DNA of 5,666 bases from Octopus sinensis (lineage: Eukaryota). The stretch lies in NCBI RefSeq assembly GCF_006345805.1, contig NW_021829825.1, forward strand, positions 1 to 5,666. Reading direction: 5' to 3'. The notes beneath the pieces were generated by a model. That model was not told the DNA's origin, ran no database searches, and saw only the letters and a program-made list of their open reading frames with translations. Shown piece after piece: positions 1,166-5,666 of the stretch. The number at the start of each line of letters is the position of its first letter. Positions within the stretch are counted from its first letter, which is position 1. A program made the translations under genes and the position numbers.

Positions 1166-1431
1166 AAGTAAAATCTATCCAAAGTTTCCTTAACATTTCT
1201 CTTCCAGAAGTGGAGATATTCTTTTATGCTGAACATAATTATCTCAAAATGAAAAATTTTAATCGAAAGATGAAAGGAATACTAAACTTTCATCTGCCTG
1301 TCAGCTATTTGCGACGAGTGGATGACAACAAAATCATAGCTGTGGCGCATCACTCTTATTGCCGATCATGTTTACACAAAACATCTCAGCTAGAAATGGC
1401 AATCCTCTTTCCCAAAATATAAACAACACAG

Positions 1432-1626
1432 TTGTTACCATTGCAACCAGACATGTTCCTGCTCTCCAAGAATATAAAAACAATTATCGTAGTCGAAGTC
1501 ACAATGCTCTGGGAGGACAGCCTCGATATTCCCCACCAGGTAAAGAGATCGAAATATCAGGACTTAGTCGACGAGGCCCTTATCAATGGTTGGTCTGCGG
1601 CCTCACCCACCGATGAAGTTTTATAA
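1432..1626 (+). pseudogene. Restriction-like endonuclease (RLE, PD-(D/E)xK) fragment of a HERO-like non-LTR retrotransposon, truncated
   Basis: Translation LQPDMFLLSKNIKTIIVVEVTMLWEDSLDIPHQVKRSKYQDLVDEALINGWSA follows the pattern I recall for HERO-clade RLE domains (LRPD-hydrophobic-S-x-x-x-K-x-hydrophobic-ELTVPWE-x5-H-x-x-K-x-x-KY-x-x-L-x-x-E-x4-GW). P-D at 1447-1452, E at 1495, K-x-x-K-Y at 1543-1557. Upstream in-frame stop TAA at 1420-1422; stop at 1624-1626 where the usual EVGxRG would continue. No RT domain seen. Confidence 0.8.
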
Positions 1627-1800: not shown

Positions 1801-1853
1801 TATATATACACACACACACACACCACACACATATATATATATATTTTTTTTTT
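1801..1853. repeat. (TA)n-(CA)n-(TA)n-T10 compound tract
   Basis: tatatatacacacacacacacaccacacacatatatatatatatttttttttt. T10 (1844-1853) is the A-tail side of the adjacent minus-strand SINE. Confidence 0.9.
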
Positions 1854-2224
1854 AAGCACTCCGTCGGTTACGACGACGAGGGTTCCGGTTGATCCGATCA
1901 ACGGAACAGCCTGCTCATGAAATTAACGTGTAAGTGGCTGAGCACTCCACAGACACGTGTACGCTTAACGTAGTTCTCGGGGATATTCAGCGTGACACAG
2001 AGAGTGACAAGGCCGGCCCTTTGAAATACAGGTACAACAGAAACAGGAAGAGTGAGAGTGAGAGAAAGTTGTGGTGAAAGAGTACAGCAGGGATCACCAC
2101 CATCCCCTGCCGGAGCGTCGTGGAGCTTTTAGGTGTTTTCGCTCAATAAACACTCACAACGCCCGGTCTGGGAATCGAAACCGCGATCCTACGACTGCGA
2201 GTCCGCTGCCCTAACCACTGGGCC

Positions 2225-2257: not shown

Positions 2258-2335
2258 ACGAAAAAAACACAAGATGAAGACCGGTGGTGTACAAAACAAA
2301 CAGATGTATTAGTATAACGCTCAGGAATAGAAAGA

Positions 2336-2377
2336 GTCTTTTACGTTTCGAGCCAACGCTCTTATAAGGAAAGGGAC
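2336..2377 (-). ncRNA. Degenerate minimal type I hammerhead-like motif (Penelope-type), probably inactive
   Basis: Minus strand GUCCCUUUC-CUUAUAA-GAGC(GUUG)GCUC-GAAA-CGU-A-AAAGAC. Stem II, GAAA and palindromic ACGU stem III are present, and stem I can pair GUC..UUU with AAAGAC. The core reads CUUAUAA instead of CUGANGA (2 mismatches). Confidence 0.4.
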
Positions 2378-2546
2378 ACAGATAAAACAAGGAGAGAAAA
2401 AATATGTGTAGTGGCTAACGATCTATCATGATATATATATATAGGCATTACGATACAAATCACCTGGTGTAGAACTCAATATACGCATGATTCTGAACGA
2501 AGCGTATAGAGCCGTAATAAGAATACGAAACGACAAAGGAATAACC

Positions 2547-2913
2547 GATTAGCATATGAACCTCATTACCTTACAGCTGTTTCCTCTTTTGTGGAGGTGG
2601 ATGGCTTAGTGGTTAGGGGCGTTGAACTCATGACAGTAAGATTGCGGTTTCGATTCTTGGATTTCGTTCCACGTTGTTCCAGTCCACTCACCTGGCAAAA
2701 ATGAGTAATCCTGAGACGGACCGGGGTCCCGTCCAGGTGGGGAATACATGCGCCATAGAAAAAGGGAAATTGGTCCTTATGAATCGGTATAACCTGAGAA
2801 GTTAACTTAGTTTGGTTTCTACTATAACATGCGGTAGACCCATAGTTGATTGTCTGAGTAACACCTTACTATTTCATCAGAGCCTCAAGCATGAAATGCG
2901 TTTTATTTATGAA
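2547..2913 (-). ncRNA. Long-stem-II hammerhead repeat, copy B, interrupted by a SINE
   Basis: Removing 2584-2819 gives a 131-nt minus-strand sequence that aligns ungapped to 3563-3693 (+) at 106/131 identity by hand count. CUGAUGA at 2880-2874; GAAACAGCUGUA reconstituted across the insertion. Confidence 0.8.
2584..2814 (+). mobile_element. tRNA-derived SINE with CORE-like central segment and an internal deletion, flanked by 5-bp TSD GTTTC
   Basis: A box TGGCTTAGTGG (2602-2612), B box GTTTCGATTC (2647-2656). Body (cacgttgttccagtccactcacctggcaaaaatgagtaatcctg...gtccaggtgg...catgcgccatagaaa...cttatgaatcggtataacctgagaag) is colinear with the reverse complement of 5427-5666 but lacks ~32 nt after the B box. 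GTTTC occurs at 2579-2583 and 2815-2819. Confidence 0.88.
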
Positions 2914-2929
2914 AACGGAGAATTAGTAT

Positions 2930-3131
2930 AAAACCAAGCGACACACAGTCACTGATCTCGTAACGAGCAAATTATGAGAGCAGTAACAATATTGATAAAT
3001 AATATTTATCGCCCCTTAAACATGGCTCTCCCTTCGGAACAGTATCATCATTATTCTCATCTCTTATAGAGATTTCCTAACTCGCTAATTTGCCTGTTGC
3101 AAGATCCAGTGACTGTGTGTCGCTTGGTTTT
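2930..3131. repeat. Inverted repeat: arms 2930-2974 and 3086-3131
   Basis: 24-bp perfect inverted match AGTGACTGTGTGTCGCTTGGTTTT (3108-3131 vs reverse complement of 2930-2953), extending imperfectly to ~45 bp. Confidence 0.92.
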
Positions 3132-3450
3132 CTATATATTGAGAGCTGGAGTGAACTACAGCTATCTCTAGCGGGCGAGTATCCACCACTGAGGATGACC
3201 ACAAAGAGGTCGAAACCGTACGGTCTGGTTGTATCGTGGCTAGAAGATAGGGGTTCACTCCCCTGCTGGCAACATATATCGGGTGCAGATTATATCGAAT
3301 AACCAGCTGAAGGAGGCGTCCTCCTGGGATTAAAAATAGCAGTAATTTCGCTTCCTATGGAACAGCCATGCTGAAGTGGTGACAAGCATTACTTCTCTGT
3401 ACAGTTACTGCTTTCATCTCTTATAGAGATTTTCTAATTAGCTGATTTGC
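3057..3450 (+). repeat. Dispersed direct repeat: 3057-3093 and 3414-3450 (357-bp offset)
   Basis: 19-bp exact TCATCTCTTATAGAGATTT, then cctaactcgctaatttgc vs tctaattagctgatttgc. Confidence 0.92.
3148..3261 (+). ncRNA. Type I hammerhead ribozyme, near-canonical, on a long stem I
   Basis: Stem I ACCA(3185-88)/UGGU(3226-29); core CUGAGGA (3189-95) plus an extra U; stem II GACC-ACAAAGA-GGUC (3197-3211); GAAA (3212-15); palindromic stem III ACCGUACGGU (3215-24); GUC triplet with predicted cut after 3225. Stem I continues with GCGA/UCGU, CUAUCU-CUAGC/GCUAG-A-AGAUAG and GGAGUGAAC/GUUCACUCC. Confidence 0.88.
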
Positions 3451-3562
3451 TTGAAGGATTAATATTATTCTAATTGTGGTAGGAGCCGTGGATATCAACC
3501 CCAAACATGTATGCTTTCTCATTATCAATACTTTCTTGTACATATGTTTAAATGCATTTCTT

Positions 3563-3693
3563 TTCTCAAATAAATTGCACTTCATGGTTGAGGCTCTGAT
3601 GAAACTGTAAAGTGTTACTCAGGTACTGAACTATGACGCTACCGCATACTATATCAGAAACAGCTGTAAGCTAGTGAAGTTCATAAGATAATC
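3563..3693 (+). ncRNA. Atypical type I hammerhead with a 54-nt stem II domain, copy A (fold 3579-3680)
   Basis: CUGAUGA (3596-3602), GAAA (3657-60), palindromic stem III ACAGCUGU (3660-67), GUA triplet with predicted cut after 3668. Stem I GGCU/AGCU, an internal loop, then ACUUCAU/GUGAAGU. Positions 10.1/11.1 are A/A (non-canonical). AATAAA at 3569-3574 just upstream. Confidence 0.72.
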
Positions 3694-3710
3694 TTTAATC
3701 CTTTGTCATC

Positions 3711-3737
3711 TTCTCTCTCTCATATATATATATATAT

Positions 3738-3822
<85 letters not shown>

Positions 3823-4154
3823 GTATGCATGTATGTATGTATGTATACATACATGTATATATATATATATATGTGTATGCATATATATATCTATGTAGCA
3901 TGTATGTATGTATGTATGTATGTATACATATGCATGCGTGTGCATATACGTGTTTATATAATTACTTCTTGCGTTATATCTATTATACATCGCAAATTAT
4001 GAAAAATACCATGTATGTGTGTTCGTATATATATGTAAGTGCGTGTATATGTGTGCGTGTATACACATACAACATACATATTTAAAATATACGCTATGCA
4101 CAGTGTATATATAAAATCATCTCCCCTCTCTCTCTCTATATATATTTATGTATA

Positions 4155-4185
<31 letters not shown>

Positions 4186-4410
4186 CATACATCCATGTAT
4201 ACGTGTATATATACATATATATATATATATACCTACATATATATATATATGTATATACATACTTATACATACATATATACACGTATACTCACACACACAC
4301 TCACTCACATATATTTCCATGTATACATATACACATCTAGTATATTTCATACACGAACGCATCCACACTCACACGTACACGCACACGAACACACTTATAC
4401 TTACATACAT
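3711..4410. repeat. Large compound (TA)n/(TATG)n/(CA)n low-complexity block with two short (CT)n lead-ins
   Basis: Direct reading. All ORFs here are YI/CM/HT repeat artefacts. Confidence 0.95.

Positions 4411-4747: not shown

Positions 4748-4784
<37 letters not shown>
4748..4784. repeat. (AC)18 microsatellite
   Basis: Direct reading; leads into the tandem array. Confidence 0.97.
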
Positions 4785-4787
<3 letters not shown>

Positions 4788-5328
4788 CGATGCTTCTTAA
4801 CTTTGTATTTAAGTAGTAACCTTTGTAGGAGATACAGAATGGTTGTTATTGAATTTCAATCGGGGATGTATGCTCAGGGGTGAATGGAGTTGACTGAATA
4901 ATTTGTGCATTTTCCCTCCTTCAAGAAAGTATTTTGCTCCCCTTCGACCAAATACACACACACACACAGTTCGATGCTTCTTAACTTTGTATTTAAGCAG
5001 TCACCTTTGTAGGAGATACAGAATGGTTGTTATTGAATTTCAATTGGGAATGTATGCTCAGGGGTGAATGGAGTTGACTGAATAATTTGTGCATTTTCCC
5101 TCCTTCAAGAAAGTATTTTGCTCCCCTTCGACCAAATACACACACACACACAGTTCGATGCTTCTTAACTTTGTATTTAAGCAGTAACCTTTGTAGGAGA
5201 TACAGAATGGTTGTTATTGAATTTCAATTGGGAATGTATACTCAGGGGTGAATGGAGTTGACTGAATAATTTGTGCATTTTCCTCCTTCAAGAAAGTATT
5301 TTGCTCCCCTTCGACCAAATACACACAC
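4783..5328. repeat. Three tandem ~184-bp units separated by (CA)n tracts
   Basis: Unit start CAGTTCGATGCTTC at 4783, 4967 and 5151 (period 184). Copies differ at only 3-5 positions pairwise; copy 3 has a 1-bp deletion. Confidence 0.98.
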
Positions 5329-5339
5329 GTACACATAGA

Positions 5340-5426
5340 GGTGCAGACGTGGCTCTGTGGTAAGAAGTTTATTTCCCAACAACATAATTCCAGGTTCGGT
5401 CCCACTGTGTGACACCTTGAGCAAGT
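5340..5426 (+). mobile_element. 5' part of a different tRNA-derived SINE (resembles octopus OK-type), interrupted
   Basis: A-box-like TGGCTCTGTGG (5350-5360) and B-box-like GGTTCGGTCCC (5393-5403), followed by actgtgtgacaccttgagcaagt. Matches a recalled octopus SINE head; sequence switches abruptly at 5427. Confidence 0.8.
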
Positions 5427-5666
5427 AAAGGTAACGTCATCTTCTCGAGTCATGCCGACTCATAAGAGCCGGTTCCCCGGTTTCCATGGCGTATGTATTA
5501 CTCCACCTGGACAGGACCCCGATCCCTCGCAGGATTACACATTTTTTGCCAGCTGGGTGGACTGGAGCAACGTGTAATGAAGTGTTTTGCTCAAGAACAC
5601 AGCGCGTCGCCCGGTCCAGGAATCGAAACCACAATCTTAAGATCATGAGTTTAAAACCCTAACCCC
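5427..5666 (-). mobile_element. tRNA-derived SINE with CORE-like segment (same family as 2584-2814); 5' end runs off the window
   Basis: B box GTTTCGATTCC (5629-5619). CORE-like TGTGTTCTTGAGCAAAACACTTCATTACACGTTGCTCCAGTCCACCCAGCTGGCAAAAAATG on the minus strand. Colinear with the 2584-2814 copy. Confidence 0.88.

Follow-up and report, generated by a model that had tools for sequence, protein, structure and literature searches.

A probable type I hammerhead of the Penelope-like-element/retrozyme kind in a rearranged patch of non-coding repeats from Octopus sinensis

The DNA considered here is a window of 5,666 nt from Octopus sinensis (contig NW_021829825.1, assembly GCF_006345805.1), to which all positions refer, with the segment 2336-3693 in focus, where an earlier note made from the letters alone had placed four hammerhead-type motifs of three sequence types. 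The segment is read here, with rather more confidence than doubt, as a decayed and rearranged patch of short non-coding repeats that holds a single genuine hammerhead of type I (HH-A), of the kind found in animal Penelope-like elements (PLEs) and retrozymes. The strings quoted for the four motifs (GAAACGUA, GAAACCGUACGGUC and, twice, GAAACAGCUGUA) were all recovered in their places, two per strand. The candidates themselves, i.e., HH-A at 3183-3231 (+), HH-B at 3579-3680 (+), HH-C at 2896-2555 (-) and HH-D at 2373-2338 (-), proved to be one good motif (HH-A), one repeated look-alike (HH-B and HH-C) and one degenerate motif (HH-D).

The HH-A motif

Every conserved nucleotide of the hammerhead core is present in HH-A (C3 U4 G5 A6 N7 G8 A9, G12 A13 A14, A15.1-U16.1 and H17), and its three helices abut that core, with helix I open and helices II and III capped. 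The proximal part of helix I (3183-3188/3226-3231) comprises six positions with one C.U mismatch, and is followed by the core box CUGAGGA (3189-3195) and a bulged U3196 that sits between A9 and G10.1. Helix II (3197-3200/3208-3211) has four base pairs, GACC/GGUC, closed by G10.1-C11.1 and capped by the A-rich loop ACAAAGA. The GAA at 3212-3214 forms part of the string GAAACCGUACGGUC at 3212-3225 (+), and helix III consists of three pairs (A-U, C-G and C-G, 3215-3217/3222-3224) with the palindromic loop GUAC. Cleavage is predicted 3′ of C3225, and the triplet is GUC. The three hallmarks of PLE hammerheads, namely a nucleotide that separates position 9 from position 10.1, the G10.1-C11.1 pair, and a palindromic 15.2-16.2/loop 3, are thus all found in HH-A.

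HH-A lies at the tip of a rod-like extension of helix I in which 3144-3182 pairs with 3232-3264. When these flanks were shuffled and the hammerhead was held fixed, none of 1000 shuffles reached the observed energy (z=-4.96). The hammerhead-constrained fold of HH-A lies only 3.9 kcal/mol above the minimum free energy (MFE) structure; plain MFE z-scores for the four candidates were uninformative. The 10-nt palindrome of helix III could pair between two copies, with a computed energy of -16.4 kcal/mol, and the 3-bp stem with its tetraloop should permit monomeric action, by analogy with the hammerheads of invertebrates.

The window was scanned with all 4227 Rfam families at permissive thresholds, first as a whole and then over 2300-3720 alone, and a structural descriptor was applied that demanded helix I (at least 4 bp), helix II (at least 3-4 bp) and helix III, all directly abutting the core. 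The sole ribozyme match in the Rfam scan was Hammerhead_HH9 (RF02275) at 3171-3250 (+). At 18.1 bits it fell short of the model's gathering score, 52, and E was 1 in the whole window and 0.26 in the 1.4-kb search. Its alignment spans the full model, with both parts of helix I, CUGAGGA, the 4-bp helix II, GAAA, helix III and the UC site, and contains one inserted U after A9. No self-cleaving ribozyme family other than the hammerhead was matched in the scan of the 4227 families. Of the four motifs, only HH-A had an Rfam hammerhead match, which was sub-threshold; the other three had none even at E<=10.

The descriptor accepted HH-A alone, and only when one extra nucleotide was tolerated after A9. 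Chance expectations per window were taken from dinucleotide shuffles, which gave 0.0003-0.0007 matches of HH-A grade per window. HH-A also has features that the descriptor did not demand: the G10.1-C11.1 pair, the GUC triplet, the bulged nucleotide typical of PLEs, canonical helix lengths (6 and 4 bp), and a loop 2 that is rich in A and can be aligned to HH9. Solely as a negative control, metagenome sequences with CUGANGA...GAAACCGUACGGU were collected from 241 million scanned records; 40 unrelated ones were found, which is about the chance number, and none of the 40 has helices I and II. Judged from its sequence, HH-A appears to be convincing, and in kind an ordinary type I hammerhead such as animals carry in Penelope elements and retrozymes. 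To this extent the earlier proposal is supported: the motif is well formed, belongs to type I, has a palindromic helix III, and lies in DNA that is non-coding and rich in repeats.

The look-alike motifs in block d and HH-D

HH-B and HH-C, the two motifs with ACAGCUGU, are the arms of one inverted repeat (3561-3707 versus 2915-2815 plus 2583-2532); with the insert taken out, the arms show 81% identity across 148 nt. Since both are copies of one block of ~150 nt (block d), they are not independent of each other. The left copy (HH-C) is split inside its GAAAC box by the insertion of a short interspersed nuclear element (SINE), and the spacer from CUGAUGA to GAAA measures 54 nt in both arms. A helix II abutting A9 and G12 was not found in either arm, and there is no 10.1-11.1 pair, because A comes both after A9 and before G12. 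When the hammerhead was forced by keeping the core unpaired and imposing helices I and III, the energy of HH-B was -13.0 versus -27.8 kcal/mol for the MFE structure (a cost of 14.8), and 3+10 nucleotides stayed unpaired at the junction of helix II; for HH-C it was -6.1 versus -21.7 kcal/mol (a cost of 15.6), with 0+6 unpaired nucleotides there. The spacer structures in these forced folds are unlike between the right and the left arm, and in the left copy the third pair of helix I is G.G.

A consensus fold of the two sequences instead pairs the “core” CUGA with a conserved UCAG. The arms show a single compensatory change, from G-C to C-G, and it backs an 11-bp helix, 5′-ACUUCAUGGUU / AGCUA(G)UGAAGU, and this helix is not helix I of a hammerhead, because 6 nt separate it from the “core”. 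On the evidence of the modelled folds, HH-B and HH-C mimic the core boxes of a hammerhead and are not hammerheads; they belong to the 3′ blocks of a repeat of ~300-370 nt (see below). CUGANGA occurs only three times on both strands of the whole window (3189+, 3596+ and 2880-), with a chance expectation of ~2.8. Matches of HH-B grade, for which no helix II is needed, appeared in about 0.005 of shuffled windows, an optimistic figure since the descriptors of HH-B and HH-D grade were tailored post hoc. The lesson is one of caution: CUGAUGA, GAAAC and a palindrome are insufficient for calling a hammerhead, and it is the helix II beside the core that discriminates.

The boldest alternative would make block d a new hammerhead variant, in which a structured insert of 54 nt replaces helix II and a dimer forms via the palindromic ACAGCUGU. 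With HH-A, which is unrelated to it and lies upstream, the variant would cut out an RNA of 443 nt (3226-3668), in the manner of a retrozyme-like element that uses two different ribozymes. This is considered very improbable. Two other readings of block d were tried and rejected. Removal of the 54-nt spacer as a mini-intron (GUAAAG in the right arm, GUAAGG in the left arm, ... AG) would not restore helix II, and a C/D-box small nucleolar RNA, suggested by UGAUGA/CUGA, would require a D box beside the terminal stem, where there is none; an Rfam match to such an RNA was likewise absent.

HH-D, which includes GAAACGUA at 2349-2342 (-), retains a helix II with G10.1-C11.1 and an ACGU in the style of the minimal hammerhead ribozymes (min-HHRs) of PLEs. 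Its core reads CUUAUAA in place of CUGANGA and is devoid of G5 and G8, which are needed for hammerhead catalysis, and an extra C sits between helix I and the core. As long as helix I had to abut the core, HH-D did not pass the descriptor, not even when two substitutions in the core were tolerated. It is not a hammerhead, and at most a dead relic of one.

Several results weigh against the reading of one genuine hammerhead among look-alikes. The HH9 score of HH-A is far under the Rfam gathering threshold (18.1 versus 52 bits); a rate of 0.0005 per window would amount to a few hundred chance matches of HH-A grade in a genome of several gigabases; HH-A is present in one copy only; and no other copy of any module was found in the protein, viral-contig and metagenome-contig searches described below. 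As for the look-alikes, the arms of block d agree at all 19 positions of the boxes (P about 0.014 if the 28 mismatches are random), and a match of HH-D grade, with two core mismatches allowed, is uncommon even if its descriptor is post hoc (about 0.0035 of shuffles). Some hammerhead ancestry of the HH-B, HH-C and HH-D motifs is therefore conceivable.

Repeat architecture of the segment

Self-comparison of the window confirmed the shared direct and inverted modules that had been noticed before. The segment is a mosaic of one inverted and two direct partial copies of a non-coding repeat of ~300-370 nt, referred to as the left (L), middle (M) and right (R) copies, and made up of the blocks listed in Table 1.

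Table 1. Coordinates of the features in and around the segment (> marks blocks read on the minus strand)
Feature	Position	Strand	Remarks
HH-A, type I hammerhead	3183..3231	+	sequence, full-length HH9 alignment, descriptor pass, shuffles, constrained fold
Rod-like helix I extension, HH-A at tip	3144..3264 (~120 nt)	+	25 bp between flanks; flank shuffles
HH-D, degenerate hammerhead-like	2338..2373	-	CUUU / C / CUUAUAA / GAGC-GUUG-GCUC / GAAA / CG / U-A / AAAG
Block d, right copy, with HH-B	3561..3712	+	CUGAUGA 3596-3602, 54-nt spacer, GAAACAGCUGUA 3657-3668, flanking helix 3579-3589/3669-3680
Block d, left copy, with HH-C	2532..2915 (2915>2815, 2583>2532)	-	CUGAUGA 2880-2874, GAAAC 2819-2815, GAAACAGCUGUA 2583-2572
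Left copy (L)	a 3039>2974, e 2973>2927, d 2915>2532	-	module map
Middle partial copy (M)	b 3057-3096, e 3088-3134, f 3135-3351 (with HH-A)	+	module map
Right copy (R)	a 3352-3417, b 3414-3453, c 3454-3560, d 3561-3712	+	module map
Right copy, 5′ part	3352..3560	+	a 73% to 3039>2974; b 87.5% to 3057-3096; c unique
Module f	3135..3351 (217 nt)	+	single-copy in window; contains HH-A
MITE-like hairpin, 208 bp	2927..3134		head-to-head L (a, e) / M (b, e) junction
tRNA-derived SINE-like insertion, 231 bp	2584..2814	+	GTTTC 5-bp target duplication (2579-2583, 2815-2819)

The M and R copies are direct, with a b-b spacing of 357 bp, and have only block b (40 nt) in common. The head-to-head junction of L and M forms a hairpin resembling a miniature inverted-repeat transposable element (MITE), the 28-nt terminal arms of which are 96% complementary and flanked by TA in a TA-rich context; a sub-threshold Rfam match to MIR6217 reflects only this hairpin. 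Module f, which carries HH-A, has a GC content of 48%, compared with 35-39% in its neighbours and 39% in the element overall, and no sequence shared by modules f and d was detected. With only one copy in the window and this higher GC content, module f may be a separate unit. Candidate A and B boxes for RNA polymerase III in module f were rejected, with both their spacing and their match being poor. At the outer arms there is no target-site duplication (GAAAC on the left versus ATCTT on the right), and a long (TA)n tract begins 10 bp past the right arm. The layout of one inverted and two direct partial units beside a microsatellite resembles PLE insertions (PMC8557442), in line with the comparison drawn in the earlier note, and is also compatible with a mosaic of DNA transposons.

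The latter possibility leads to the reading in which all of the hammerhead resemblance, that of HH-A included, is coincidental, and a foldback or MITE-type DNA-transposon mosaic happens to spell a hammerhead at the apex of a hairpin. The long inverted arms at the outer edges, the complementary and TA-flanked termini of the inner hairpin, and the position of HH-A at the apex of an inverted repeat would all fit such a mosaic, as would a total of CUGANGA boxes that equals the chance expectation, the sub-threshold Rfam score, and a rate of 0.0005 per window that amounts to hundreds of chance matches in a large genome. A coincidence, however, has to account for the features of HH-A that were not demanded by the descriptor, from G10.1-C11.1 and the bulge to the A-rich loop 2, and a foldback transposon for the missing target-site duplication around the outer inverted arms and for the presence of blocks a and b in direct orientation as well. 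This explanation is regarded as unlikely.

Coding content and search for relatives

As the earlier note had stated, there is no reverse transcriptase (RT) open reading frame (ORF) in 2336-3693; coding sequence for RT or for a GIY-YIG endonuclease, or a remnant of either, was not found in the segment, and the ORFs of the segment have no homologues. A composite of 749 amino acids, joining all stop-free segments of the element in six frames, was compared with 5.8 billion proteins, and among the 6428 word candidates there was none with E<=0.1. The exact products of the ORFs at 3090-3302, 290-1153 and 1432-1626 are not on record. An exact scan of viral contigs for both motif patterns gave no match, nor did an exact scan of metagenome contigs for the pattern of block d.

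Upstream of the segment, a degenerate coding remnant was found at 1210-1626 (+), with an in-frame stop at 1420-1422. Its part at 1423-1623, about 900 bp upstream, has 128 relatives in a library of 1.84 billion proteins, and in the long relatives the matched domain is C-terminal to RVT_1 and zf-RVT, with no GIY-YIG; the closest named match is a chimeric fish gene model. A link of this remnant to PLEs was ruled out, since its architecture is that of the 3′ end of the ORF of a retrotransposon of the long interspersed nuclear element (LINE) type.

These results bear on the proposal, close to that of the earlier note, that the whole of 2530-3710 is one composite non-autonomous Penelope-like or retrozyme element in which every hammerhead-like motif goes back to a functional ribozyme, with HH-B and HH-C as a variant that has a large insert in helix II and acts as a dimer via ACAGCUGU, and with HH-D as a decayed min-HHR. 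One inverted and two direct units, with a motif close to the 3′ end of each and (TA)n bordering them on the right, do match PLE insertions, and dual motifs on opposite strands, at a distance of 100-700 bp, have been reported for PLE remnants. Moreover, Naiad PLEs, remnants of which occur in Octopus, show an “HHR_half_core” with halves 35-50 nt apart (PMC8557442), the core boxes are fully kept between the arms (P about 0.014), and three kinds of motif together in 1.35 kb would be improbable if they were independent. The proposal nevertheless is unlikely, and a composite element with two unrelated ribozymes cannot be upheld when only one competent ribozyme is present: HH-B and HH-C have neither helix II nor G10.1-C11.1, their forced folds cost ~15 kcal/mol and are unlike between the copies, and the compensatory change backs another helix. 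In addition, an RT or GIY-YIG remnant is missing, and the only coding remnant nearby is of the LINE type; modules f and d are without detectable common sequence; and the HH-B and HH-D descriptors were post hoc.

Comparison with known hammerhead systems

In animals, type I hammerheads are known from non-coding tandem repeats, i.e., retrozymes (PMC7229834), and from the pseudo-long terminal repeats (pLTRs) of PLEs (PMC4209133), and a 2026 preprint has argued that retrozymes derive from PLE pLTRs and that solo monomers are common and dispersed (10.64898/2026.07.22.740005). HH-A fits the definition of canonical metazoan hammerheads, with a helix I of 6 bp and a helix II of 4 bp (PMC4209133). It resembles the hammerheads of non-LTR retrozymes (PMC7229834) in its type I topology, its helix I of 6 bp, after which comes an internal loop, its 4-bp helix II, A-rich loop, short helix III and palindromic tetraloop; module f, for its part, is non-coding as retrozymes are, has a GC content below 50%, and at 217 nt falls within their range of 170-400 nt. 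Unlike retrozymes, there is no tandem array of HH-A, and the direct neighbour R shares only the 40-nt block and has no valid hammerhead. Retrozymes are tandem units of 170-400 bp, each with a type I hammerhead, and the locus fits only the “solo monomer” form.

With the hammerheads of PLE pLTRs (PMC4209133), HH-A has in common the bulge between A9 and G10.1, the G10.1-C11.1 pair and the palindromic helix III, and the locus as a whole seems to recall PLEs (PMC8557442) in its inverted-plus-tandem copies by (TA)n and in motifs that lie a few hundred bp or less from each other on opposite strands. In contrast to the min-HHRs of PLEs, its helix II has 4 bp rather than the typical 7-8 bp, and its helix III is a real 3-bp stem. 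The window also differs from PLEs in having neither an ORF nor a remnant for RT or GIY-YIG, and the inverted and tandem copies are those of the a-b-e-d repeat, whose PLE origin would be conjectural and whose motif is no valid hammerhead. Block d, when compared by description only, is like the Naiad “HHR_half_core” in that its CUGAUGA and GAAA are 54 nt apart and lie near the 3′ end of a repeat beside (TA)n; such Naiad cases have been treated as non-canonical and not as ribozymes (PMC8557442). HH9 (RF02275) is a conserved intronic hammerhead of amniotes. The alignment of HH-A covers this whole model; the two have equal helix lengths, and their loops 2 are similar. HH9, however, is a single-copy conserved intronic motif, whereas HH-A lies in repeat DNA; their similarity is architectural and not one of family membership. 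In its looks and presumed action HH-A is like the hammerheads of retrozymes and PLEs, but it is only a putative member of either kind of family: there is no tandem array here, and no RT or GIY-YIG.

Under the favored reading of a repeat patch with one genuine hammerhead, a transcript of the plus strand would fold at HH-A and cleave 3′ of C3225, leaving 2′,3′-cyclic phosphate and 5′-OH ends. If f-type units were arranged in tandem, cleavage would free RNAs of unit length, which tRNA ligase could circularise as in animal retrozymes. Only one competent ribozyme is present at the locus, and therefore no unit-length RNA could be excised from it and this copy would be a “solo”, dead-end insertion; judging from the sequence, the HH-A locus is probably a solo, dead-end module of the retrozyme/PLE type. 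The SINE insertion and the MITE-like hairpin would explain the rest of the modular pattern.

The suggestion that such hammerheads might be new to cephalopods does not hold, as 235 Hammerhead_1 matches together with Penelope elements are reported for the giant-squid genome (PMC6962438), and remnants of Naiad PLEs have been recorded for Octopus spp. (PMC8557442). Should HH-A belong to a multi-copy family, a cephalopod-type genome would join the hosts of PLE-derived or retrozyme hammerheads, and module f would serve as a query for tandem arrays and possible circular RNAs. With type I hammerhead matches and Penelope elements of cephalopods already on record, this would add to a phenomenon that is well described rather than reveal another.

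Other features of the window

The window is rich in repeats, among them numerous microsatellites, several SINE-like copies derived from tRNA and a tandem array of 184 bp. One family accounts for the SINE-like sequences at 2584-2814 (+) and 5436-5666 (-), which are about 80% identical. Another copy at 1846-2220 (-) has the same tRNA-like head and a poly(A) end, and the one at 5340-5425 (+) has a separate tRNA-like head. ARAGORN called no tRNA gene at any of these four copies. The tandem repeat of 184 bp lies at 4770-5335 (3.1 copies, 97% identity); each of its units opens with a short (CA)n, and it is without an RNA-family match. Between the left repeat arm and a short (TA)n at 2431-2443, a near-perfect palindrome of 29 nt, TATACGCATGATTCTGAACGAAGCGTATA, is found at 2480-2508.

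Long microsatellites occur at 902-1151, with ~62 units of (CACT)n, and at 1669-1800, with ~45 units of (TTC)n at 96% purity. Dozens of sub-threshold Rfam matches to microRNA families (mir-297, mir-466, mir-3149, mir-1277 and others) were obtained at 229-524 and 3758-4288; these are low-complexity artefacts of the (TA)n and (TG)n microsatellites.

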